From assembly GCA_009103225.1 (NCBI GenBank), contig RHPI01002990.1, positions 549,988-574,914 on the forward strand: 24,927 nt of DNA, given 5' to 3'. Each line of letters begins with the position of its first letter. Position 1 is the first letter of the stretch. This document shows, piece by piece, positions 10,401 to 24,927 of this stretch. Both the position numbers and the translations under genes were made by a program. Under the pieces are notes generated by a model. That model saw nothing but the letters and a program-made list of their open reading frames with translations, did not search any database and was not told where the DNA came from. This stretch comes from Chlorokybus atmophyticus (taxonomy: Eukaryota; Plantae; Mesostigma and Chlorokybus algae).

Positions 10401-12306
10401 TTAGAACCCTGTTGCAAACACGCCAACCTTCACACTTACAAAAGGCGCGAAGTTGCGAGTAAACTGTGACCCCGATAGGTCTAGTGAATTTCCAGAAGCG
10501 TAGACGGCTCCACCAACACCGCCTGAGGCAGAAACCTCATTCCCAGTGAACGTGCACCCTTGAATGGTAGCTGAACCTTTTAGAACATACACTCCTGAAC
10601 CAAACTGCACAGACAACGAGACATGAGCTTCTTGACACTGAATACGATGTTGACAGCTACAAAAAGAACTCACCGGGGCTTGGGTGTTGCCTTCAAAGTG
10701 ACTCGCACTGAGAAACAACGATCCGGCGGTTTGAATAGCACTATTGATGTTATTGGTGAAGTTGCTGCTGTCAATAATCAGGGTGCCTGCACTATTGGTG
10801 ACAATGGCACCTGAAGCATCCAACTGTGACACACATTTGAAGTTAATGGTGGAAGGTGAGCACCTTCCACACATTCACATGCGAGCGCTTGAACCTGCTT
10901 ACCAACGCTGTGTTGTCGGTAAACTCCGAGGTTCGTATTGAGAGCCTGCCTTTGCCATTCCAAAGTGCCCCACCCGCAGATGCACTGTTTCGCTGGAAAT
11001 TGCACCCAGTGACGTTTATGCGCCCCTCGTTGACAACAACACCTCCAATTGCCTGAGCAAAGCACATATGGCAACCATACTATCACAAGTACTCAACTGT
11101 TAAGTTTTGCCAGATTAATGGAGGGTGAGCTGCTACCAGACTATGCTGAGGTACCAGCTACAAACTTGTTCCTAAACCCTCTCTTAACATACACATGGAG
11201 TGGCGGATGCTTACACTAGGAGAACTGAGGGGCAGAGAACCACTGCAATGGATGCTGCCATGATATGTGATGGGGTAACTTAACTACCTTGTGTGTGCCA
11301 AGTTACCAAGTACTTACTTCTCACCAGTCACGATGTACATAGTTACAGTCTATGTGCCCCGCTAACCTGAGCTCAATGCATGTTGTGTCTCTGTGCACAA
11401 CTGCGAGGATATGCATTTCTTGAACACTGACTCAAAGGCGAACACAACCAATCACCCATGTGACGTATACATATGCCCTTAGCTCACCGGCGCATCAGCA
11501 CTGTTGCCTAAAAACTCAGATGTGTCCAGCACCGCAGTTCCTGTGTTGTAAAGTGCAGCAGCCCCTGTGTCACCCTGCAAGAAGAGGACTATTGATAACA
11601 GCCAGAAAGTATGCCTGCATGACAAACAGCACACTTGTTGGCAAGAAACCTACCGCATTCGTATTGGACATGCGCAAGAATGAACACCGCAAAATGCTGA
11701 TTGTTCCTGCATTGATAATGGCCGCAGAGGAAGCCTGCACACGTAAATCATGCCTGTTGTCAAAACAACGTTTCTCTCAATCTATTACAGTGATACGTTT
11801 CAGCTTTGTGTTTACACCATTGAGCACGACAATGCACAACTCGCCCTTGTAATGTTGAAGCCAGAAAGCTGGAGGTCCTGAAGCTGAAGGTCACCAGCTG
11901 CAACAACTGAAAGCACCGCACCACCACTGGTGCTTGTTAGCACCCGCCGTGGCTGCTGCCTGTCTCCTCTGACAATGACGCTGGAGCTCACTGTCAATAT
12001 CTGAGCTGTGGCAATGTCCGCGAGGACCACAATCTCCTTGACCGAACCATCTGCAAGAGCGGCGGCCAACTGGCTGCTAGAAGAGGCCGTCGCTGCAAGC
12101 AGACATAGTATGCAAGCGTTACATTGTTGTGTACACCGGCCAAGAAGGAGTTGCACACAAGGTCAGGTCAGTCAAGAGTTTGTTGACTGCTGTCCTACAA
12201 TACCTGTTTGTGCTGTTGCTGAGCGGAAAGCAGCTGCTAGCTGTAGCAAAAGCGTGCAGAGAAGGAATCTACCCTGCTGAGACGCAACCCCTCTACTTTG
12301 ACCCAT
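4465..12306 (-). CDS. Large surface/membrane protein (~1427 aa, 24 exons): signal peptide, polymorphic-membrane-protein-like parallel beta-helix repeats (GGA[IVL]...FxxN), Cys-rich furin/EGF-like region, then a multi-pass (~7 TM) C-terminus
   Basis: Phase-consistent exons: 12306-12204 (signal peptide MGQSRG...FLLCTLLLQLAAA), 12092-11845, 11574-11488, 11052-10903, 10823-10674, 10604-10440, 10213-10064, 10000-9839, 9538-9386, 9291-9214, 8922-8881, 8783-8691, 8536-8459, 8362-8282, 8202-7903, 7703-7484, 7400-6962, 6803-6644, 6564-6481, 6382-6273, 6180-5980, 5865-5676, 5575-5130, 4858-4465 (sum 4284 nt). Motifs include GGALW/GGAIQ/FxxN repeats, CxxC...CPxGAxC...GYW, GYAGNLCGVC, KVIVTYIQ and YGFLYTGYK...FWE. 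Two introns are modelled with GC donors. The last exon may contain a further intron (GTGAG donors near 4635). Confidence 0.88.
5063..5108. repeat. Intronic 21-bp tandem duplication
   Basis: aattgtgatgtgacaagacga / agttgtgatgtgacaagacaa / agttg. Confidence 0.9.
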
Positions 12307-13459
12307 GCTGCACAAAAGAATTTTCAGGTGATAACAGCAAAGCTTAGTAAAAGCTGCATTGCATTGTGTCATTGCAGAACTTATGCAGCAGAGTCACATG
12401 TCCAGGCTGTTGACCAGCTGGATGCATGTCTTGCATGGCTGCTTGGCGTTCAAGTTGTGACACGACATGAAAGCAGCCAACCAAGCTGCGCGAACGCAAC
12501 GTTGGCAGACCGAACACCCTAGCGCAAGTAAGCTCTACCTGACTTGCTATGCAGACATGCCAACAGCGCTCCCAACCATAAACCAGGCCGTACCGTCACA
12601 GCAAGAGCGCCCTGTTGACGGAAACTCACCTTCAAGCCACAAACCGCACCTTTCATGTCCTCGCCACCATAAGGAACCTCGCCGCAGCAGCAAGTCGGCA
12701 CACTCACTGCCGCCGTCACCGCCACAGCGGCAAGCAACGCTTCCAGTGATGGTCAAGCGACTCCATTGACCAAGCCAGCAAGGCAGGCCAACCCACCACG
12801 CCGCCGACTCACCAGACGACCTAACACATGCCTTTAGCCTCGCTAACACAGCCTGAGTGCACTCCCTTAGCAGGCAAGCTCCCACCACCCACGCCGCCCA
12901 CCCCGCTCACGCCTACACCAAGGCCGCTGCAAAGTCAAAAGCCGAATTTCTCGAACTTTTTGTTGTACCAGTGGTTTTTTCTGTCCAGCCTTTTGGCAGA
13001 GTTGTTATGGGAATTCCTACAGCATTGTTTACAGACACAGGGACAGGGCGTTTTTGGTCCGACTTTGTCCTCCTTCTCAAGGTTTTCCGTGTCTTCACGT
13101 GCGATGGTGGCTTGCATGTTATGACGGGAAGCAGCGGGGGTCACTCATAACTATCGCGTTTAACTGCGTGATCCTCCGTCGTCCTCGCATGCTCCGGTGG
13201 CAGCCGACAAGATTACGCGGACGTTTGGCATTATCACCTTTCAGATCGGCGGAAGGCGCGCAATGTACCTGCAAGAACCGCCGATGGATGCCAGAGCCTC
13301 TGCTCAGTGCAGTGTGCACACTGCCGAGCGCTTCGGAGACAAAGAATTGGCGACCGGTCACCGGTCTACACCCACCCTTGCCAAGCTGAACATGTTCAGC
13401 GACGTACCGTTGACGACACGGCACACAGATTCATGCAACAAGTACCACAATAGACAGTA

Positions 13460-13882
13460 CAGTCTACCCCGTTAAAGAGCATACTATTTATCCTCGGCTC
13501 TTGGCGGTGTAATTCTCTTGACGTCCAAGAGCATCATGCTCTTGGGTGTCAAGAGTATATATATTCTCTTGACACCCAAGAGGTTTCATCGCGCCCATCA
13601 CGCCCATTGCATCACGCGTGCTACGGCATTTTTGTAATTCTTGCAAGCTTTAGAGAGGGATATTTCAAGGTCGAGGGAGTAGCGCGCGACGGGTGTGGCA
13701 TAAAGCGTGACGCACGCGGTGACTATGGCGTGATGGGTAAGGTGTGACGCGCAGTTAGCGTGATCATTGCGGTTAAGCATAATCTCTTAGGCACCAACAT
13801 TTGCCTGTATTCCGTTTGGTAATTTCTATGCTATCAGCGGGGTTATTCTCCTGGAGCGAAGTCTCTTAGCGGGGGCAGACTG
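13460..13882 (+). mobile_element. MITE copy A, Tc1/mariner-like, non-autonomous (423 bp)
   Basis: TIRs CAGTCTACCCCGTTAAAGAG ... CTCTTAGCGGGGGCAGACTG, flanked by TA on both sides (13458-59 and 13883-84); no ORF; related copies at 15667-16856. The superfamily is inferred from the TA target duplication and CAGT termini. Confidence 0.85.
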
Positions 13883-13998
13883 TACTGGTTTATCAGATTT
13901 ATTGTAGCAAGTTGAAGATGGGCATCATCTTGACTATTGATCAGCATCAGTTAACTTGACTGTACCGTATAAATGTGTTTAATGAGCATGCTTACTTA

Positions 13999-14560
13999 TT
14001 CGGCTGTTGACCATGTTTGATGACGCAGTAACTATAGTGTGTAATCAATTAGCGTTAAAGGGTAGAGTGGATTAGTTAGAACAAGGGTGAGTAGTGGCGG
14101 CATGTCTTTGGGGTATGGGGCCTGCCCCGACCTCGTACCGCCAAAAACGCGGCCGTTTTAATCACTAACTGTGCCGCAATTGCACTAAATCCCTAGCAAT
14201 TTGGGTCGCCGTTGGTAAGCGGTTGCCGCTGAGATATTTGAGCATCTTTTACGCATCTTTGCAATGATTGACCATTTTGCTGCCTTTTTGAGCAACTGGC
14301 TGTTGTCACCGTTGCGATCCCATTTGATCAATCTCATGTGTGACCAAATGGTGGCCTAACGATGCGATTTTTCGTTTAGTTGAATCTTAACGTTAAGGTA
14401 GTTCAGGTTAGCATTATTTTGATGGTCGTAACCTCTCTATTATCTACTAAAAATCGCAGCACGTACCGTGGCGTGAACGTTACGTTGATTATTAAGTTTT
14501 GAAACACTTACCAGCGTTTGCTAATCACATGGCACCATGTTGCGCCATATCGCCGCATAT
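13999..14560 (+). repeat. Left arm of a ~560-bp inverted repeat (5' end of outer element); partner at ~17165-17730
   Basis: ttcggctgttgaccatgtttgatgacgcag... is the reverse complement of ...ctgcgtcatcaaacatggtcaacagccgaa (ends 17730). A hand count gave about 28 differences in ~530 bp (~95%), mostly transitions. Confidence 0.95.
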
Positions 14561-14613
14561 GTAATCATATGGCACCATGTTGGTCCATATCGCCGCATAT
14601 GTAATCATATCGC
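14522..14613 (+). repeat. 40-bp tandem repeat (2.3 copies) built from 10-bp subunits
   Basis: taatcacatggcaccatgttgcgccatatcgccgcatatg / taatcatatggcaccatgttggtccatatcgccgcatatg (37/40 identical) / taatcatatcgc. Confidence 0.93.
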
Positions 14614-14714
14614 AAAATTTTACTACACATCAGAGATATTGTGCATGTGGATTTGCACCTTTGCACGCCCTCATTGCTGGACTGTGCCGAGATGGTTCTT
14701 TTGGATGGCGACAA

Positions 14715-15347
14715 ATGCCAGGGCGGTTGATATGTTCCTGGTGTGTTGTTTCGTCATCCGCTATGACTTATGAGCAACATTGCGATTTGTCTCAGCATTG
14801 CGAATTGTGGGACGACTGCGATGATTTGCTTTCCTGTTGGCAAGATGCACAACGTAAGTTTGTCACGCGAATGCAATGTTGTTCTTTGTGCGGGCATGTA
14901 CAGTTTTACTCTGCTGCTGCTACTTATCGTCCAATGTATCGACGATCAGTATCCACCGTTGCACCATATGATTTGGCTAATGTTTTTATGTCCGATTATA
15001 CCAAGTGTGATAGTGATTACTACCAATGCCATCTATGTAGTCACGGGTCGGAGCGTTCCGGTTACATTGTATTACACAGCGCAGTGTACATTCGCAAGTT
15101 GTTGGAGATACATCCAATGGTAGTGCAGATGTTGTCCCTTGTTAACACGTCCATGGCGCTTTGCGACTTATATAACTCATACAGTTTCACTTCGGGCCAA
15201 ATTCAGCAGTTGAATATGATTAACGGTCCGTTTATCACTTGGGATGAGTTTACACATCAGAACCAACATGCCATCTTGTTGCTGGAGTTGTTGAGCGAGC
15301 TATTATCGTCCAACACTCTGGTTCAGAAATATCAGACCTTGGCAGAA
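14715..15347 (+). pseudogene. N-terminal fragment of the RepHel gene (Cys-rich region plus LxxLLxxNxxVxxY helix), cut off by the nested insertion
   Basis: ORF 14577-15410 (ATGs at 14715 and 14763) has CxxC pairs (CSLC, CHLC) and ELLSELLSSNTLVQKYQTLAE, like the LxxMLxxxNPYVxxF segment found N-terminal of Helitron Rep domains. It joins in frame to 17731 when 15348-17730 is removed (..TLAE|QPFGSDG..). The residues after 15347 are insert-derived. Confidence 0.75.
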
Positions 15348-15666
15348 CTAGCGGTGCGGCTGATTGGGCGTGTGACTGGGCCGGCCGGCCGGCCGGGAGG
15401 CCGGCATTAGGGCACAAAGACACATCACGCGCATTGTGGGCCATCAGCCGAGACTACATGCCTGCCGCGCATACCGAGTAGCCCGCCTGCCTCTCATTGG
15501 CTATGCGACGTTTATCAGCTATCGGCCATTCGATTTGTGTTAAACAAATCTCAACCTTTCAAAGCACATCCCCATATCGTGCAATTGCACAAAGTATGCG
15601 AATGAATAAAAGAAATACATTTTTACCACAACATGCACGGTGCACATATGCGTCATGTGCGTTATA

Positions 15667-16135
15667 CAGTCCACCCCCGCTAAAAGACTTTGCTCCAGGA
15701 GAATAACCCCGCTTGTAGCATGCGTTGTGAGATCACCAACGATGCTACAGGCAAATGTTAATGCTTCTGAGAATATGACTAACCGCGAAGAGCATATTAT
15801 TTTTCATGACATTTTTGCAAATGTAAGTGTGCATATTCTTAACATTGAGGGAGTAGCGCGTGACGGGTTTGTCATCAGGCGTAATGAGTGTGATGGACAA
15901 GGCGTGATGGGATACAGTGCAACACGTAATCAGCATAATGAGCGTGATGGCATAATAGACGTGACGTAATGCGCGTGATGTAACGGGCGTGATGGGCGTA
16001 TTTAAACTGCTTTATAGCATACAGATGCTCTTAATGTTTAAGAGCATATTACACTATTTATCGCCAAGAGCATAACCCCGCCAGGAGCAAACTATCTTTA
16101 AAAATAAACAGAATGCTATTAAAAGGGGTAGACTG
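15667..16135 (-). mobile_element. MITE copy B (469 bp), inverted relative to copy A
   Basis: TA|CAGTCCACCCCCGCTAAAAGACTTTGCTCCAGGAGAATAACCCCGCT ... AAAAGGGGTAGACTG|TA; both ends match the reverse complement of copy A's ends, and the CGCCCATCACGCCC motif is shared. Confidence 0.85.
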
Positions 16136-16186
16136 TACAATAAATGTTTCAATGTAATTAGGTACAACTATGTACCTTAAACTGTA

Positions 16187-16728
16187 CAGTCTACCTCCGC
16201 TATACAAATCACGTGTATCTTTCAGCTTTCATTCCATCATCGGGGTTATTCTCTTGGCGTTTACAGTACTATATACTATTTTATTCTTTACATAATATAT
16301 ATTCTACTAACAGGGGCATTGCGAAATAACCGTAAGCCACGTTATTATATTGTAACGTGGCATACATTAAATCAACAATAGCATTAAATCAACAATAGTT
16401 CAACAATGAATTGATTATTAATAGTATGTACGTAACTATATATGAGTCTATATATGAGTCTACGTAACTATATATGAGTCTACGTAACTACATGAGTCTT
16501 TTAACATGTTATGCTTATAATATTAAAATAAACATGTTATTAACGAGGTATTCCCCCGTAACAAGACTGAGCTCACTCAAAAGATTAACCTTCCGTTGTA
16601 GTCTTATTGCGTACAAAACTATTCCACTAACCGATGATACTTGCCTGTGAAACCATTAGTCTTCTGCAAATCTATGATCTCAACGGGGTTATTCTCATAA
16701 ACCGAAGTCTTTTAACGGGGATAGACTA
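16187..16728. mobile_element. Degenerate/composite MITE-family segment (copy C)
   Basis: Starts TA|CAGTCTACCTCCGCTA, contains CGGGGTTATTCTC motifs (16241, 16684) and a decayed TIR near 16543-16610, and ends GTCTTTTAACGGGGATAGACTA|TA. The internal structure is not fully resolved. Confidence 0.6.
16365..16499. repeat. Short tandem repeats: 17-bp duplication and ~20-bp minisatellite
   Basis: cattaaatcaacaatag x2 (16365-16398); acgtaactatatatgagtct-type units, about 3.5 copies (16429-16499). Confidence 0.9.
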
Positions 16729-16730
16729 TA

Positions 16731-16856
16731 TAGTCTACCCTTTTGTAAGAGCATACTATTATCCTCAAAAATCGTATGCTCTTGGACAGGGTTATGCTCT
16801 TGAACGTTAAGAGCATATATATGCTATAAGCGCAGATTCATTACGCCCATCACGCC
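16731..16856 (+). mobile_element. Truncated MITE copy D (left end only)
   Basis: TA|TAGTCTACCCTTTTGTAAGAGCATACTATTATCCTC...ACGCCCATCACGCC matches the left end of copy A, then switches abruptly to a Helitron-3'-like block. Confidence 0.75.
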
Positions 16857-17164
16857 TATTGGTCGGGCCGGCCGGCCTGTCGGCAGTCAACCTACATCAC
16901 ACATCCCGCGTTAGGGCCATCACACGGCACCCGCGACTGCAGGGCTGCGCGGCAGTATGTGCGACCCGCCTGCTTCTCATTGGCTAGGCGGCGAGGACAA
17001 GCGTTACACCGTTAGATCTGCTCAAACACAATCCTGGCCGTCCAAGGCACATCCAATTGTTTAAGCGCTTGCCAATAAATGTAAAATTAAGCACAGTTCT
17101 GCATACATGGCCGCTTATGGCTGCATGTTGATCATTTTAATGTGTTACATTTTTAATATTGATA

Positions 17165-17730
17165 AATATGGTGCAATATGGTGCAACATGGTGCGATATG
17201 ATTAGCAAATGCTGTTAAGTGTTTCAGAACTTAATAATTAACGTAACGTTCACGCCACGGTACGTGCTGCGATATTCAGTAAATAATACCGAGGTTACGA
17301 CCATCAAAATAATGCTAACCTGAATTACCTTAGCGTTAAGATTCAACTAAACGAAAAATCGCATCGTTAGGCCACCATTTGGTCACGCATGAGATTGATC
17401 AAATGGGATCGCAACGGTGACAACAGCCAGTTGCTCAAAAAGACAGCGAAATAACCAATCATTGCAAAGATGCGTAAAAGATTCTGAAACATATCTAAGC
17501 GGCAACCGCTTACCAACGGCGACCCAAAATTGCTAGGGATTTGGTGCAATTGCGGCACAGTTAGTGGTTAAAACGGCCGCGTTTTTGGCGGTACGAAGTC
17601 GGGGCAGGCCCCATACCCCAAAGACATGCCGCCACTACTCACCCTCGTTCTAACTAATCCACTCTACCCTTTAACGCTAATTGATTACACGCTATAGTTA
17701 CTGCGTCATCAAACATGGTCAACAGCCGAA
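17165..17730 (-). repeat. Right arm of the ~560-bp inverted repeat (5' end of the nested element)
   Basis: Reverse complement of 13999-14560. Confidence 0.95.
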
Positions 17731-20700
17731 CAACCATTTGGTTCTGACGGCATCCCCACTGTCGGTTCATCTACTATTCGTAGCATTGTGTCTCGTGCAC
17801 AGGATCGTAATCCTTTGAACATTGCTGGTGAATCAGCATACACATACGTTTTAACCACTTTGTTGCCATTTCCTTCGCGCAGCACAGTTGAAGTCACAGT
17901 GGACACCATGTTGCGCGTTGGACATATGTCGCTGCGTGAGCCTTGTTTTCCTCTTTTGCTACACATGGATACAGGTGGTGTGTACAATAATCCTGGTTTA
18001 ACTGTTGAGTCTGCTCTGTTTCCCATGTTGTTTCCGCACAATCGTGGGTTCTTTGATGGTAATGTGTACAGCAGACTGTCAGACTATGTCAAGTTCCGTC
18101 TTACACAATCGTTCTCAGTTTTCACATTGTACAAGCCTTATTTGCTGTTGATGTACCAAATCCGTCAATCACTTCTTACAGTCACAAAGTGCCGCGAAGT
18201 TGCTGTGGACGCTGATATTAAAAAGTTCCTCAAACAACGACCTACTGCCACAATCAACGATGCCATCAAAAACGCTGTAAAATTTCGTGTCCCTGGTGAC
18301 ATCATTGGATCTCCGAGTTTGCATCGACAAAAGTTGAGTGAGCTGCTGTGTCTGGTTGAGCATTGGGGTATGCCTCATCTCTTTGTCACCATGACTGCAG
18401 ATGAAGTGTCCAGTACCAAACTCCCTGAGATCATTGATTTGCAGAATGTTCTCCACAATGTCTCCACGCAACTTAGTTGGCGCGATGCCCCTGTGGAGTG
18501 CGCACGTTTGTTTCATCATCGGTTCAGCACCTTCCTTGAAAAATATATCATGCGAAAGGATATCCTTGGACGTGTGATGCACTATGTTATCAGGTATGAA
18601 ACACAACACTGTGGATCTTTGCATGCACATGTTATGTTGTGGTTACATCCCGACGATGTTAAACGAGTTTGCAGTGAAATCACTGCGTTAATCCCCGGAG
18701 ATTTTGACCATGCAAATCAGCAAATAATTGTACCAACTGATTGTAAACTGCGAGTCCTTTATGAATGTGTTGTACGCAAGCAAATGCACAAGTGTTCTGA
18801 TTTTGGCAGTGGCTGCAGAGCATTTGACAACAAGTGCGACATGGGCTTTCCGTATCCCGTACAACCAGATCGTCGACCTCAGTTCAACACAGAAACGCGC
18901 AGGTACGATTATTACAGACCACGCACTTGTGACCGCAATGTTGTTCCCACACATCCAGTGCTTTTATTGTTGTGGGGTGCTCATTGTAATGTGTTGCAAG
19001 TCACTGACAGTCATTGGAGCAAGTATTTAGTCAAGTACACAACTAAAATGGAACCTTGTGGCACTGTTGATGATGCATTAGACACCAATGCACTCGGTTT
19101 GCAAGGATTGACTGTTAACGAATTGCGCATATTGAACACAATGTACTTGTCCAAACCCATTGCTCCAGCTGAAGCTGCTTTGATATGTTTAGATATTCCC
19201 ATCATGCAAATGTCGTCCAATGTAACATATGTTGACACGCGTTTGCCTAACAATCGTTCTCGCATAGTGAACAGTCGTGCACGGACAGTAATTGTGCATC
19301 CCATTCATCGTTATTGTGTCAGGCCTGACGAGGTAGAAAGAGTCACAATGTACAACTACTTTCGACAGTACATGCACCGAGATGGAGACACTGTGCCACA
19401 TAACACTGTGCGTACTCTAAGAGACAGACTGAATGCATTCGTTTATGAGTTAGCTGTCCCGCGCATCATCAGATTCACGGATTACCATCCTGTACACAGC
19501 ACTGAAGGGTTTTGTTTCAATTTGCTTCTTCAGCGGGTTACTTTTCGCTCTGAAGTTGATTTGATTTCTTTGAACAACCAATCACGCACTTACTATGAAG
19601 AATGTGTGTTGCGGGGTTTCATTAACAACACAAACCGCAGTTTGTTGACACATGTCACGCGCTATGCCGAACGTCATCTATACAATGATGTTAAGATTCA
19701 CCATATGACGAATGCCATGATGCAGACCACTGATAATGCTATTAATGCCTTGTCTATGGCTGCAGCTGGTCCGACAAATAGTCAAACTGCACCAGAACGT
19801 ACCACGCAGTATCCAACAGCTTCATCATCCAATCCTGCATCTCCAGCTTCAACTGTGACAACGGACTCAGATGTATCGGCGCCAATGTTTCAAGGTACAT
19901 TGAATGTTGAGGAGTTTGCGTTTGCGAACAATCTCTCTTTGACCAGCCAGCAAGAATGCACCGCAAGTAGTATCATTGCAACACCGGTTGGTCTACATGT
20001 GATATCTGGTTGTCCAGGAACAGGCAAAACATTTTTGACCAAATTCATCACTCACAAGTTGCGCGTTGCTGGGATACCTGTTTTACTCAGTGCTACAACT
20101 GGCGCTGCGGCTTTGCGGCTCAGCTCATCAGCTTCAACTGTACATTCCAACTTCGCAATACCTGTCAACGGTCAGCAACTCCGGTTTGTAACTGCTATGG
20201 ATGATGCTTACAAACTGTTACATCATTGTCGAGTATTTATTATTGACGAGTTTTCCATGATGACATCGCGGTTGTTTGACTTGGTGATGCTGCGCTTACA
20301 GCAAGTTCATGGACCAGAATTTCTACAAACAATCGGCGTTGTATTGGTTGGTGACCACAAGCAACTGCCAGCAGTTTGTGGACACAAAGTCCAAGACACA
20401 TCGCAGGTTTGCCACAAATGCCATATTTCTGCATCACAGAGGTGGCCATTACGTAAGCAACATTTTTTATCTGTTTCAGTGCGTCATGCTTCAGACCCTC
20501 TGTTTGCTGAATTCTTGATTCAGATTCGTTCTGGCATACCCAGTTCAACAGAGATAGCAGATGCGTTAGGTGGCTGTCTGGTCACTTCGGAGTACTTACA
20601 ACAGTTACCAAGTGATGCAACCATATTGTGTTCACATGTACAAGACACACTGGCTTTCAACAGCATGATTGTGAGACAACGTTTTGCCGCCGATACCATT

Positions 20701-21204
20701 GTGCCAATACAAATTACTTCTAATGCAGTGAACGTGCCCGAGCTACACGACTGGATTCACAAGCCCAAGTTCAACTTATTACCTTCAGTCGCCAAGGGAG
20801 CAAAGGTGTTGGTTTTAGAAAACGTTTCACTGCAAGATGGTGTAGCCAATGGGTCTTTGGGAACAGTGACGCAGTTTAGATACTACAAAGGTAATGTGAG
20901 CAGTATACAAGTTACATTTGACCATTTGGCAGACTCCATGTGGATGCGCCGAACAATACAGCAAACAACAACGTTTCAAGGCAAAACGTACTACAAAGCT
21001 GTGTTTCCTTTGCAGCTAGCGTATGCAATGACAGTGCACAAGTGTCAAGGTGCAACGCTGCAATCAACTACTGTTGTCCACATGCAGGAAGCTTTTGCTC
21101 CTGGATTGTGGTATGTGGCGTTGTCGCGCGTGACAAACAGGGCCTATTTACGGTTGACGCGTTTACCGCGCCCTGAAGAGATGACGCCCGTTCCTGGGGA
21201 TTGA
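17731..21204 (+). CDS. Helitron-like RepHel, main part (1157 aa, intronless, no stops): HUH Rep endonuclease plus PIF1-family SF1B helicase; HLE2/Helentron type
   Basis: Rep motifs PHLFVTMTADE (I), RYETQHCGSLHAHVMLW (II, HUH) and KYLVKYTTKMEP (III, two Tyr), plus DAPVECARLF and FPMLFP. Helicase motifs GCPGTGKT, IIDEFSMM, LVGDHKQLPAV, SVRHASDPLF, FPLQLAYAMTVHKCQGATL and YVALSRV. The frame is open upstream of the listed GTG to the insertion junction. Confidence 0.95.
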   Translation, partial: QPFGSDGIPTVGSSTIRSIVSRAQDRNPLNIAGESAYTYVLTTLLPFPSRSTVEVTVDTMLRVGHMSLREPCFPLLLHMDTGGVYNNPGLTVESALFPMLFPHNRGFFDGNVYSRLSDYVKFRLTQSFSVFTLYKPYLLLMYQIRQSLLTVTKCREVAVDADIKKFLKQRPTATINDAIKNAVKFRVPGDIIGSPSLHRQKLSELLCLVEHWGMPHLFVTMTADEVSSTKLPEIIDLQNVLHNVSTQLSWRDAPVECARLFHHRFSTFLEKYIMRKDILGRVMHYVIRYETQHCGSLHAHVMLWLHPDDVKRVCSEITALIPGDFDHANQQIIVPTDCKLRVLYECVVRKQMHKCSDFGSGCRAFDNKCDMGFPYPVQPDRRPQFNTETRRYDYYRPRTCDRNVVPTHPVLLLLWGAHCNVLQVTDSHWSKYLVKYTTKMEPCGTVDDALDTNALGLQGLTVNELRILNTMYLSKPIAPAEAALICLDIPIMQMSSNVTYVDTRLPNNRSRIVNSRARTVIVHPIHRYCVRPDEVERVTMYNYFRQYMHRDGDTVPHNTVRTLRDRLNAFVYELAVPRIIRFTDYHPVHSTEGFCFNLLLQRVTFRSEVDLISLNNQSRTYYEECVLRGFINNTNRSLLTHVTRYAERHLYNDVKIHHMTNAMMQTTDNAINALSMAAAGPTNSQTAPERTTQYPTASSSNPASPASTVTTDSDVSAPMFQGTLNVEEFAFANNLSLTSQQECTASSIIATPVGLHVISGCPGTGKTFLTKFITHKLRVAGIPVLLSATTGAAALRLSSSASTVHSNFAIPVNGQQLRFVTAMDDAYKLLHHCRVFIIDEFSMMTSRLFDLVMLRLQQVHGPEFLQTIGVVLVGDHKQLPAVCGHKVQDTSQVCHKCHISASQRWPLRKQHFLSVSVRHASDPLFAEFLIQIRSGIPSSTEIADALGGCLVTSEYLQQLPSDATILCSHVQDTLAFNSMIVRQRFAADTIVPIQITSNAVNVPELHDWIHKPKFNLLPSVAKGAKVLVLENVSLQDGVANGSLGTVTQFRYYKGNVSSIQVTFDHLADSMWMRRTIQQTTTFQGKTYYKAVFPLQLAYAMTVHKCQGATLQSTTVVHMQEAFAPGLWYVALSRVTNRAYLRLTRLPRPEEMTPVPGD

Positions 21205-21249
21205 CGTTGATAATTGGTAAGTCCAGTTAGTGTTGCGCAATGGTGTGAC

Positions 21250-21513
21250 ATATGTTGCATCATTTGGCGATATGATACGATGTTGCGCAACGTTGTTTGA
21301 TATCGACGCATATCGCGAGTGTTTGAGCATGTTAGATCGATGTTGCACAACATTGCACTACATGCTGCCAAGTTGGACGATATTGCTTTAGGCGACATGG
21401 TACGCTGTTGCGCAACGTTGTTTGATATCAACGGATATCGCATGATGTTTGTGCATGAATGAACGATGTTGCAAAACATTGCGTTATATGGTTCCATGTT
21501 CGACGATATGGAA
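21250..21513 (+). repeat. Degenerate 10-bp-periodic array
   Basis: tatgatacga tgttgcgcaa cgttgtttga tatcgacgca tatcgc..., with a near-duplicate block (tgttgcgcaacgttgtttgatatc) at ~21281 and ~21406; same unit type as 14522-14613. Confidence 0.85.
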
Positions 21514-21970
21514 CCATATCGCGTAAGATGAACTGCATCTCATGACCACACTGTACGCATGTACGGTTTGATGACATGGCACATTCAGTTGATTGCCGTA
21601 TCACCCGTCATCCAACCATGCTTTGTATGCAATCATCTCCTCCACCCCATCAACTCTTCTGACCAATCCCATGGCGGCATGGCTTAGCACGTGGTGTTCT
21701 GCCGACACAGACCCTTTTCCTTGCCACGCAGATATACATAGGCAATATATCTGGCGCTGCTGTAAATGTACACCAGTTGAAACATCAAGTCGCAGGGCAC
21801 TGTGCATACATGCCTGTCGCATCACCTGCCTCAGACACCTGCCCATCGTCGAAAACTGTCACCTCAGCCAGACACAGGTAACAACGTGGCTCAGTTGGCC
21901 TCTGTTTGATCTCGAACCTGTGAGTCATTAGTTGGCGAGCGTTACATTGACAATGCACTTGGGTGACAGC

Positions 21971-23419
21971 ATGGACTTTAACGAAAAAGACCTGTTCGAG
22001 AGGCTCCACGCTCAAATTTCCAATGACGAACCTGGCTCTAAGCGTCCACGTACCAGTAGCTCTGGAGGTGATGCGCCTGGTCGTCCGCTGACAGCGAAAC
22101 AACTGGTAGCATGTGACTCAGCAGGAATCACTCCCGACAAGCTTGAGGGGCTATTCACCAAGCCAGAGGCCGATAAGTTAATTCGCCCTGCCAAAGAGAG
22201 AGCTCAAGAGTTTCGCATAAACCACGGGGACTCTATTGCAACTGGTGAGAAGCGGAATCTGTACACTGACACACTGTGGTGCATGTGTTAACTGATGCAA
22301 GTATGTGTAAACATGCATCTACTACCTCAGAAAGCTCGGCATCGACATTTCTGATGACCTGAAGCGCCAAGTAGCTTACAAGCTGTGGGACACTCTGATG
22401 CGCAAGGACAACCCAGAGCTTCCTGATAATGCAGAGCCAATTTACGCTAATCAGGTATGTATCAATGTGACACTGGGTCATTGGCCAAATACCTGTACTT
22501 AACAGATGTTTCACAGGTGTTCGAGCTGGTTCACATTCGCAAAGTTTGCAACTGGGAGACAGCGCGTTTCATGTCGCAAGGAAAGGCAGAAAAAATCATT
22601 GAGCAAATCAACAAAGCAGACCCAAGGGAAGCTCCAGTAGCAAATGTTGCTGCCAATGAGGTGTGTGGTTATCCAAGTTGATGATGGGATTACTGTGCTT
22701 GCCAAGATTAGTCGCGATGCGTGAGAATGCTATGGTTGCGTAGCAGAGTTCAACAACAATGGGCACATCAAGCCAGAACCCATGCAGTCGCTCCATCTTT
22801 TGTTACACTTCTGTTTTTGCATTGGCTCCCTTTGTTCATATCCTGTACCCGTGGTCTGTTGCCTTGCTTCTACTTCGCTACGCATATATGTTCCATATTC
22901 AACATCAATCTCGGATGTGTACTGCAGCATTCATAGTACCATTGTTCTTTGCAGGTAAACGATGAGGTCCAGATGATCCTGCGATCCTCGGCAGCAAGAA
23001 ACAGCATCAATGCCAACACCAACATTCGCGCTTCTGCACGTCTCTGTGCGCAACCCATAAACACAGGTGTGAAGTTTATCTACAAGTTGACGCATGTGGC
23101 AACACAGAAAGTATATATCGGTCAAAGTAACCACCCAGGTCGACGTTATAAGGAACATCGTAGACACCCGCCTAAGAAAATGTTGCCTGACTTAGATAGC
23201 AGTAAACCTTTTGAAGAGCAAGTGCAGTTGGAAGTATTAGATAAAGGACATTGCAAGGCGCGAATAGATTGGTTAGAAGCTATGTATATCGCCCAATACG
23301 ACTCTCGAGGGTGCAAAGGTTACAATATGGATGAAGGCAACCCAGCGAGGTTCAAAGCATTTTGGGCGCGCCGACGTAGTGGTAGCGGTTTTGGCAATAA
23401 GAAAAAGAAAAAAGAGTGA
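21971..23419 (+). CDS. Probable multi-exon gene: N-terminal region of unknown function and a C-terminal GIY-YIG endonuclease domain
   Basis: Exons ~21971-22260 (MDFNEKDLFERL...KRPR...), 22331-22454 (KLGIDISDDLKRQVAYKLWD...), 22517-22660 (VFELVHIRKVCNW...) and 22955-23419. The last two junctions are clean phase-0 GT-AG. The first needs a weak phase-2 donor; the strong GTGAG at 22245 is out of phase. Confidence reflects the exon model. Confidence 0.55.
22955..23419 (+). CDS. GIY-YIG endonuclease domain (terminal exon, or a standalone ORF from ATG 22973)
   Basis: FIYKLTHVATQKVYIGQS (GIY/YIG pair), RRYKEH (conserved Arg/His), WLEAMYI (metal-binding Glu), GYN (conserved Asn); basic tail RRRSG...NKKKKKE resembles an NLS. 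Confidence 0.88.
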   Translation, partial: VNDEVQMILRSSAARNSINANTNIRASARLCAQPINTGVKFIYKLTHVATQKVYIGQSNHPGRRYKEHRRHPPKKMLPDLDSSKPFEEQVQLEVLDKGHCKARIDWLEAMYIAQYDSRGCKGYNMDEGNPARFKAFWARRRSGSGFGNKKKKKE

Positions 23420-23569
23420 AACTGGCTGCTGTTTGAGTAGGTCACCATGTGTGTTGGACAGTTTGTGTGACACCATGCTTTGGTGTCGATATAATCAATG
23501 GGTGCATATTGGTGGTGAGCTTCATAAATGTACGTATGCTACGTATGCAAGAACTCGTCATGCGACACT

Positions 23570-23665
23570 GCCCCATACCATTCCATATCATAACATATGG
23601 TGTCACAGCGATTGATATGCCAACATATGATGTCATATGGCAAAATGTCGCGCGACGTCAATGGA
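23570..23665 (-). repeat. Degenerate 10-bp-periodic array, reverse orientation
   Basis: The minus strand reads cattttgcca tatgacatca tatgttggca tatcaatcgc tgtgacacca tatgttatga tatggaatgg; same family as the 14522 and 21250 arrays. Confidence 0.75.
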
Positions 23666-24925
23666 CATTGTGAGTTCCCTGTGCGTCATGTTAACACACG
23701 AGCAAAACGGGTTCCATGATACAGGTCTACTCAGGGGGGGGGGTGGCTGCGAAGGCCCAGCGCCAGCAGCACCGGTATTGTGTGTGTCAACATCCTCATC
23801 ATCGTCACTGCTGCTGAGTTCATATACAGGGAAATCGGGGAGCTCTACACCACGTGGTGGGCGCTGCATAAAAATAAGTTGAAAGCGGCGGCAGAAAGGA
23901 CACTCAACTTGAGGGTGAGATCCTGTGCGCAGCTTCTTCAAGCACTGACGGCACAGTGTAGCTCCGCAACATGGCATTGGTAACAACACTTCCACTGGCT
24001 TCTGCTCGCAACAGATCCCGCATGTGTTGTCTTCACTGTCTACCACGCGCTTGCCCTTGTAGTCCTGGCGCACATGTTGCTGCATTTCTTCGGTTGTTGC
24101 TGCTTCACGCAACAACGGGGCAACTGTGCAGAGGTAGGTACAAAGCTTCTCCCATAGTGTTTGGTATAGTTGCAGTTGCAGCTGCCTTTTAACATCTCTG
24201 CGATTGAGGAGCGATACCTGGCACACCAACCAATGAACACCAAGGTGTTGCATTTGTTGATAATTGTCATAATTGTAATTGTTCAGTACCTGTCCGTCAA
24301 GGTCGATCTCTTTCAACATGTATTTTGCCAAGCTGTCCAACTCCTTTCTGGTGACTTCCAGTTCCTGCTGGAAGCTCTCGAACTGCACGCCATTGGGTTC
24401 AACACGCTCACGAAATCGCCAGTTTGCCGTTTGAAGACGCAGGACGCTTGTCAACTCTGAGATCTACAACAGAATGTCAGTTGCTGGAAAATCTAACAGT
24501 GCAGCAACACACACCTTTTTTTTTTGTGCAGCAATTGTCTGGTTGGCTTCTCCAATCTGGCATTGCAGGCGCGCCAATCTTGCATCATTACGCTCATTGT
24601 GTTGCTGCAACTGTGTGGCCCTGCGCTGAACTTCTGTCAGCTGCTTGCGTAAACCCACGATGCTTGCTGCGTCTGCGTTTTTGACACTTTCTGTCATTTT
24701 AACGTGCTCAGCACGCTCTTCGTGTAATGCACGCTCCAGGTCAGCAGAGCGTTGTTCTGCAGCAGCATGGCCTGCACGCAGACCATTGATTTCACTGATC
24801 ATTTTCAACAGCTTTGCAGCGATCTGGGGATCAGGCTGTGTCTGGTTGCGGCGTAGCTGCTCTGCTTGCTTCAGGTTACGCTCGCGAAGGACTGTGTTCT
24901 CGTCAACTAGTTTGAAATCTGCCAA
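23633..24925 (-). CDS. Coiled-coil plus RING-finger protein (putative E3 ligase); 5' end at or beyond the window edge; spliced
   Basis: Heptad-rich exon 24925-24515 joins through a 51-nt GT-AG intron (24514-24464) in frame to ISELTSVLRL.... RING-like CGIC-x13-CC-x4-CRQC-x13-CPFC, with Ala where His is usual, then an acidic/Pro-rich tail. Further small introns are possible (e.g. ~24289-24218). The ORF begins at TTG, and the preceding codon is cut by the window edge (xTG). Confidence 0.75.
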
Positions 24926-24927
24926 CA

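Follow-up and report, generated by a model that had tools for sequence, protein, structure and literature searches.

A RepHel gene of Chlorokybus atmophyticus interrupted by an antisense, non-autonomous Helitron-like insert of probable chimeric origin

Two plus-strand open reading frames (ORFs) in different frames, 14577–15410 and 17788–21204 in the ORF listing of the window, raise the question whether they are separate genes or the halves of one gene, and, in the latter case, what separated them. The window is the whole analysed stretch of 24,927 nt from the streptophyte alga Chlorokybus atmophyticus (assembly GCA_009103225.1, contig RHPI01002990.1, positions 549,988–574,914 of the forward strand), and its numbering is used throughout. 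The two frames belong to a single RepHel gene of a Helitron-like element (HLE; below, the host) that is interrupted by an antisense block of 2383 bp (the insert). The insertion is confirmed as a real event, with its placement known within a 4-nt ambiguity, by empty-site contigs, by colinearity with uninterrupted homologues and by a CTAG end that is reused elsewhere. The preferred reading, with a probability of about 0.85, is that an autonomous Helitron-like host starting at 14000 was split by a non-coding relative that is itself a read-through chimera.

Removal of 15348–17730 (2383 nt, length mod 3 = 1) gave ...TTG GCA GAA-CAA CCA TTT GGT (here and below a hyphen marks the joint) and the peptide YQTLAE-QPFG. 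The fused RepHel frame was free of internal stops and comprised 1368 aa when started at ATG 14715 and 1352 aa when started at ATG 14763; the initial annotation had expected this cut to restore one RepHel ORF of about 1352–1368 aa, and it does. The downstream frame is stop-free back to 17731; the unfused N-terminal piece reads 21 codons into the insert and stops at 15408–15410. Five placements of the cut, from 15345–17727 to 15349–17731, led to the identical fused product because GAAC is present at both edges of the insert.

In the C-terminal piece the Pfam families Helitron_like_N (3e-23) and PIF1 (1.8e-19) were detected, and the Helraiser transposase structure 7LCC was matched at 6e-27; the catalytic motifs are kept: HUH motif HAH (residue 298), YLVKY tyrosines (432), Walker A GTGKT (763) and Walker B DEFS (839). 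The predicted gene product is, by these motifs, a RepHel, i.e., an HUH nuclease with two tyrosines and a PIF1-like helicase of superfamily 1B (SF1B), the combination by which an HLE is recognized. The N-terminal piece is a Cys-rich domain with CxxC...CxxC motifs; no family was matched in Pfam, the search of the protein collection with this piece by itself gave no match, and the ESM Atlas look-up returned sub-threshold Cys-cluster matches only. Over 14763–15347 the domain is conserved across the algal clade of the RepHel (CxxCG...CxxC, LS, G, P, N..Y and a final E), and it may be a clade-specific zinc-binding domain.

Protein search with the C-terminal piece gave 38 proteins (best identity 37–39%; named best homologues from the green algae Prasinocladus and Edaphochlamys). 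The N-terminal piece was aligned at the N-termini of 14 uninterrupted homologues, ending one residue before the start of the C-terminal piece; thus in P0008 the former ends at 215 and the second residue of the latter stands at 217, and in P0021 the positions are 149 and 151. With a hidden Markov model (HMM) of 14 full-length homologues the N-terminal piece was found at E 1.3e-31, ending at model position 211, with residue 6 of the C-terminal piece at 218; on addition of the fragments to the alignment, the N-terminal piece ended in column 440 and the C-terminal piece began in column 441. The last Glu of the N-terminal piece is invariant among the homologues, and the pair Glu-Gln occurs at this place in three of them too. 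The fused protein is colinear with uninterrupted RepHel proteins across the junction, and the peptide of 14715–15347, which the initial annotation had taken for the N-terminus of such a RepHel, does occupy that position in the 14 homologues.

Contigs of two public runs (X1 and X2, from two studies), containing about 45% of the sampled words from 13400–19400, were compared with window positions 13600–19400. One joint was common to both runs: 15344 to 17728, skipping exactly 2383 nt, with 4 letters fitting either side. The empty-site contig of X1 was 344 nt long (114 + 230 nt; 0 + 2 mismatches) and that of X2 952 nt (518 + 434 nt; 2 + 7 mismatches); their depths (23 and 14.6, respectively) were similar to those of the RepHel contigs (19.5 and 12.8). 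The codons of TLAE and QPFG are joined directly in both, as had been predicted for other copies of the gene. Another X1 contig consists of unrelated DNA (...TTTCATATA) followed by the insert from 15346 onward; the CTAG end, standing there beside a different flank, is therefore a terminus used more than once.

The unique host flank 13794–13987 is almost missing from the runs (depth 0.8 in X1 and 0.64 in X2), so that the joined forms may be other copies or come from other strains. Ten of the 12 listed differences between the window copy and the uninterrupted contigs are nonsynonymous, which fits neutral drift between transposon copies and does not date the insertion. Telling the decaying copy from the run-versus-window differences on the homologue alignment was dropped, the mapping being too loose at 35% identity. 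A recent insertion is plausible, the basis being only the absence of stops and the divergence of about 1% from the empty form.

The insert (Table 1) was compared with the host in the reverse complement: 17156–17733 matched 13996–14570 with 93.4–93.6% identity over 576–579 nt and 97% over the first 210 nt; the first 13 nt of both 5' ends are identical. The similarity begins at TTCGGCTG (13999/14000), the host reading ...CTTAT-TCGG and the insert ...GGTTGT-TCGG. The rise of X1 contig depth from 0.8 (13794–13987) to 93 (13988–14181) supports 14000 as the 5' end of the host. The insert thus shares the left terminal sequence of the host (93.5% over 575 nt), as is expected of a non-autonomous partner. 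It encodes no RepHel and is without a transposase of its own: the sole ORF of at least 100 aa, 15640–15969, falls in a unit resembling a miniature inverted-repeat transposable element (MITE), and Rfam and tRNA scans of the insert gave nothing.

Table 1: Coordinates of the features of the RepHel locus in the window.
Feature	Position	Strand	Remarks
Host element left terminal region	14000–14570	+	part common to insert; begins ...CTTAT-TCGGCTGTTGACC
40-bp tandem repeat, 2.3 copies	14522–14614		just upstream of RepHel start; host–insert homology stops here
RepHel N-terminal piece	14715–15347	+	stop-free; 211 aa from ATG 14715, alternative ATG 14763
Insert	15348–17730	- (antisense to RepHel)	2383 bp; exact skip in X1 and X2 contigs
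Terminal 3' module B	15348–15640	-	diverged duplicate of module A; same terminus beside another flank in X1 contig
MITE unit Y1	15667–16135	-	TA-flanked; inverted relative to unit upstream of host; 61% identity over 483 nt to 13457–13884
MITE unit Y2	16187–16728	+	TA-flanked; terminal inverted repeat CAGTCTACC...; AT-rich core with 17- and 20-bp tandem repeats
MITE unit Y3	16731–16861	+	truncated exactly at module A start
Inner 3' module A	16862–17155	-	inverted 5'-terminal 13-mer copy near GGCCGGCCGGCC palindrome
Insert 5' module	17156–17730	-	copy of host left terminal region; 93.5% identity to 14000–14570
RepHel C-terminal piece	17731–21204	+	1157 aa plus stop
Fourth MITE unit Y_up	13460–13882	+	TA-flanked; 117 nt upstream of host 5' end; outside host element
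Probable host cargo	21971–24925		spliced GIY-YIG gene (+), Pfam 1.4e-5; RING-finger gene (-), 1.1e-4

On the plus strand the insert begins with CTAG at 15348, its antisense reading hence ending in CTAG. On comparison of the empty-site contigs with the occupied site no target-site duplication was found beyond the 4-nt GAAC ambiguity, which is explained by the insert termini themselves. Three placements are compatible with the fixed length and with the pairs of 5' and 3' flanks: (i) TTCGG...CTAG, chosen in the initial annotation, in the style of proto-Helentron (PMC11417382); (ii) TCGG...CTAGT, in which T-T stands at the 5' flank of the host, on both sides of the insert and at the 3' flank of the second copy, in line with the HLE2 rule (PMC11417382); and (iii) CGG...CTAGTT, which lies between TT and C/T like the insertions of Chlamydomonas Helitron2 (PMC3627910). 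Placements other than (ii) give G/A-T or T-C/T rather than T-T.

The earlier claims fare unevenly at these ends. The antisense, non-autonomous nature of the insert and its CTAG end without target-site duplication were borne out; the copy of the host 5' end, put at about 95%, is there with the lower identity given above. Membership in the host's own family is supported by the 5' end only, the 3' end of the host probably lying outside the window; the junctions, said to define termini and target site, do locate the joint, but fix the termini only to the three placements.

By its repeat structure the insert appears to be something other than a plain deletion derivative: two diverged 3' modules, A and B, flank three MITE units. 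The modules are about 64–72% identical to each other, and within the window the GGCCGGCCGGCC palindrome is confined to them (chance expectation 0). The 13-mer of the 5' terminus recurs inverted in module A (16880–16892, 10/13 matches), 2 nt before the palindrome; the module ends ca. 8 nt past the palindrome and ca. 22 nt from the inverted copy. Module B contains a (GGCC)n palindrome with the stem CGGCTGAT...ATCAGCCG and the end ...CCGCACCGCTAG, a direct 11/13 copy of the 5'-terminal motif (15439–15451) and an inverted 8/10 copy located after the palindrome. The best-conserved core of the 3' modules (15470–15500 and 16955–16990) reads, antisense, GCCGC(A/C)TAGCCAATGAGA(G/A)GCAGGCGGG and includes a CCAAT-like box. 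Metagenome contigs were scanned for exact patterns of the 5' terminus and of the conserved module core, and neither pattern was found.

All four MITE-like units of the window are of one family (terminal inverted repeat CAGTCTACCCCG..., TA flanks, conserved right end GCGGGGTTATTCTCCTGGAGCGAAGTCT); the TA flanks together with the CAGT ends suggest a pogo/Tc1-type origin. Units Y2 and Y3 have one TA in common, and Y3 aligns with the other units over the first ca. 165 columns and then diverges where module A begins. The idea that an element in tandem further upstream has its 3' end in 13460–13999 was rejected: the region is a TA-flanked MITE plus unique DNA, with no CTAG end.

The preferred course of events is as follows. 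An autonomous Helitron-like host begins at 14000 and encodes a RepHel of about 1352–1368 aa; its downstream cargo probably includes the genes with GIY-YIG and RING domains. One block of 2383 bp from a non-coding relative, running from the family left end (TCGGCTGTTGACC...) to ...CCGCTAG(T), landed antisense in the codons ...LAE-QPF..., shifting the frame and terminating translation, and integrated without target-site duplication, as expected of rolling-circle (HUH nickase/helicase) transposition. At the donor locus, a short element (~16862–17729) with a Helitron2-like 3' end would have lain within a TA-flanked MITE cluster, inside one MITE. From the 5' end of the short element, transposition would have overrun the element's own 3' end and continued across three MITE units, until the 3' terminus of another, diverged element (module B) brought it to a halt. 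All 2383 nt would afterwards have entered the RepHel gene together.

Read-through is favored because A and B are duplicates, the palindrome is confined to both, the inverted motif precedes the palindrome in A, and Y3 is cut at A. The summed contig depth over 16898–17673, 2–4 times that over 15346–15927, hints at a chimera too, contig depth being a poor measure of copy number. Read-through past the 3' end is experimentally established for Helraiser and is found also in bat genomes (PMC4778049). Several points weigh on the other side: with the host 3' end beyond the window, the host family may recognise terminus A, B or neither; no separate copy of the short element ending at ~16862 was seen directly; the predicted hairpins do not exceed shuffled sequence in stability (z −1.0 and −0.6); and no listed X1 or X2 contig bridges the occupied site, so that the insertion is seen in the assembly of the window only.

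Among the alternatives, the one that survives best, unlikely as it appears, is a simple non-autonomous derivative whose single true 3' end is module B and which was altered by MITE insertions and an internal duplication, prior to its landing or afterwards, with no read-through. The complete TA-flanked ends of Y1 and Y2 resemble those of ordinary MITE insertions, and a MITE of the same family lies also outside the element (13460–13882). This history is at odds with the truncation of Y3 exactly at the edge of module A, the other half being missing from the far side, and with the terminal-motif-plus-palindrome arrangement of module A itself, which resembles a real 3' end; moreover, all 2383 nt are absent together at the empty site, so any MITE insertions would precede the move. 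Far less probable is an assembly artefact, i.e., a repeat misjoined into the RepHel gene in the assembly of the window: gene and insert are both repeated in the genome and neither edge of the occupied site is bridged by any X1 or X2 contig, but no misjoin would give a complete unit, from the exact family 5' terminus to the reused terminus, whose removal restores the frame to the base. Least credible of all is an ancestral block of 2383 bases (intron or linker) that the joined forms lost by microhomology-mediated deletion at GAAC: the 4-nt microhomology at both edges of the block would allow it, but 14 distant homologues run colinearly through the junction and have no additional residues there, the block carries a transposon 5' end whose first 13 nt are the same as those of the host, its other end occurs elsewhere beside another flank, and no cut placement yields GT..AG borders (ends GA..CC).

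As to the family, DUF6570 upstream of Rep serves as the HLE2 marker in HELIANO (PMC11417382). Even with the E limit relaxed to 5, Pfam detected it neither in the window pieces nor in 7 homologues (control P0033: 1.4e-10), and profile–profile comparison (hhalign) of the N-terminal domain with the DUF6570 region gave a probability of 0.15%. In the RepHel tree the algal clade is monophyletic (98) and sister to a group bearing EN or DUF6570; P0034 (Helraiser-like, 827 bits to 7LCC) stands far off on a very long branch. The RepHel scored 170–180 bits to DUF6570-bearing proteins versus 97 bits to Helraiser. Tree and scores are consistent with a RepHel of HLE2 in the wide sense, P0034 being the single HLE1 sequence in the tree. 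From the DUF6570-bearing HLE2 proteins the algal RepHel clade differs in having no detectable DUF6570 and in forming a clade of its own beside them.

Read as a read-through chimera, the insert might document a 3'-end bypass that occurred naturally in a streptophyte alga, in an element of HLE2 type: a failed terminator, three MITEs transduced, the terminator of a diverged relative borrowed and a helper transposase gene knocked out. Together with a RepHel clade that has a Cys-rich N-terminal domain of its own and no DUF6570, it might point to a separate algal HLE lineage, recently active, whose ends and target site are defined; we see the chances for and against this wider proposal as balanced.

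The closest known systems are the Helitron2/HLE2 elements of green algae (Helitron-1_CRe, Helitron-1N1/1N2_CRe; Bao & Jurka 2013, PMC3627910). Common to both are the RepHel, the lack of a target-site duplication, a 5' end starting with T, a T-rich flank (here 5' flank ...GTTGT or ...GTTGTT, 3' flank T or C), a 3' hairpin or palindrome closely preceded by a short inverted repeat of the 5' terminus (here in module A), and a non-autonomous partner sharing a few hundred 5' bases at about 90% identity, as in the Helitron-1_CRe pair. The differences (PMC3627910) are that at the used terminus, module B, the palindrome precedes the inverted motif, and that no 5' hairpin is predicted here: the folding energy of the first 80 nt is only −6.1 kcal/mol in the host (z −1.1) and −3.9 kcal/mol in the insert (z +0.5).

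The read-through products of Helraiser and bat Helitrons (Grabundzija et al. 2016, PMC4778049) show the same succession of 5' end, apparent own 3' end, flanking DNA and second terminator CTAG, with the whole unit mobilised together and empty-site evidence. Helraiser, in contrast, is an HLE1 with an A-T target, and its bypass was observed; here bypass is deduced, the transduced DNA would be a MITE cluster and the new end would come from a related element. The proto-Helentron of Phytophthora (5'-TT...CTAG-3'; PMC11417382) resembles the insert in placement (i), 5'-TTCGG...CTAG-3'; this placement is, however, not unique, no 5' stem-loop upstream of the left repeat was found, and the host is an alga instead of an oomycete. 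HelenSM92, an HLE2 family of Sphagnum with a GIY-YIG domain (PMC11417382), is comparable by domain content only: the host here apparently carries a GIY-YIG nuclease gene downstream of the RepHel, but as a separate, spliced gene accompanied by a RING-finger gene.

The GIY-YIG domain is located at the end of the spliced gene; the gene on the opposite strand encodes a coiled-coil/RING-finger protein and continues past the window end. Both genes probably belong to the cargo of the host element. In 21204–24927 the 3'-palindrome was absent, as was any copy of the terminal motif, so the host element probably continues past the window. Short related repeats with CATATGGCACCATGTTGCGC...ATATCGC as their basis were observed before the RepHel start (14522–14614), after its stop (21266–21509; 126 bp × 1.9 copies), between the GIY-YIG and RING genes (23560–23670) and in the insert 5' module (17165–17200). 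They look like shared intergenic spacers and are possibly promoters or terminators of the element.

The event is of the ordinary kind of nested transposon insertion, with a rider that is probably chimeric, and no new mechanism is involved: Helitrons are already known to insert into helper genes in nested fashion and to form read-through chimeras. For a poorly described algal Helitron-like family the locus supplies termini at base resolution, to within three placements, together with a target site and an empty site. With occupied and empty forms differing by about 1%, it also indicates recent movement of the family or of its non-autonomous riders. These data are useful for annotating the repeat-rich genome of this alga and for choosing candidates for transposition assays.

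Outside the element, a (TA)n/(TG)n microsatellite was noted at 1–112, the first 1 kb having 33.5% G+C versus about 50% elsewhere. ORF 10401–10874 (-) gave a weak right-handed beta-helix match (Pfam Beta_helix, 2.2e-4, below cut-off). The surrounding 2–13 kb contain short ORFs only, as expected for an intron-rich gene region.

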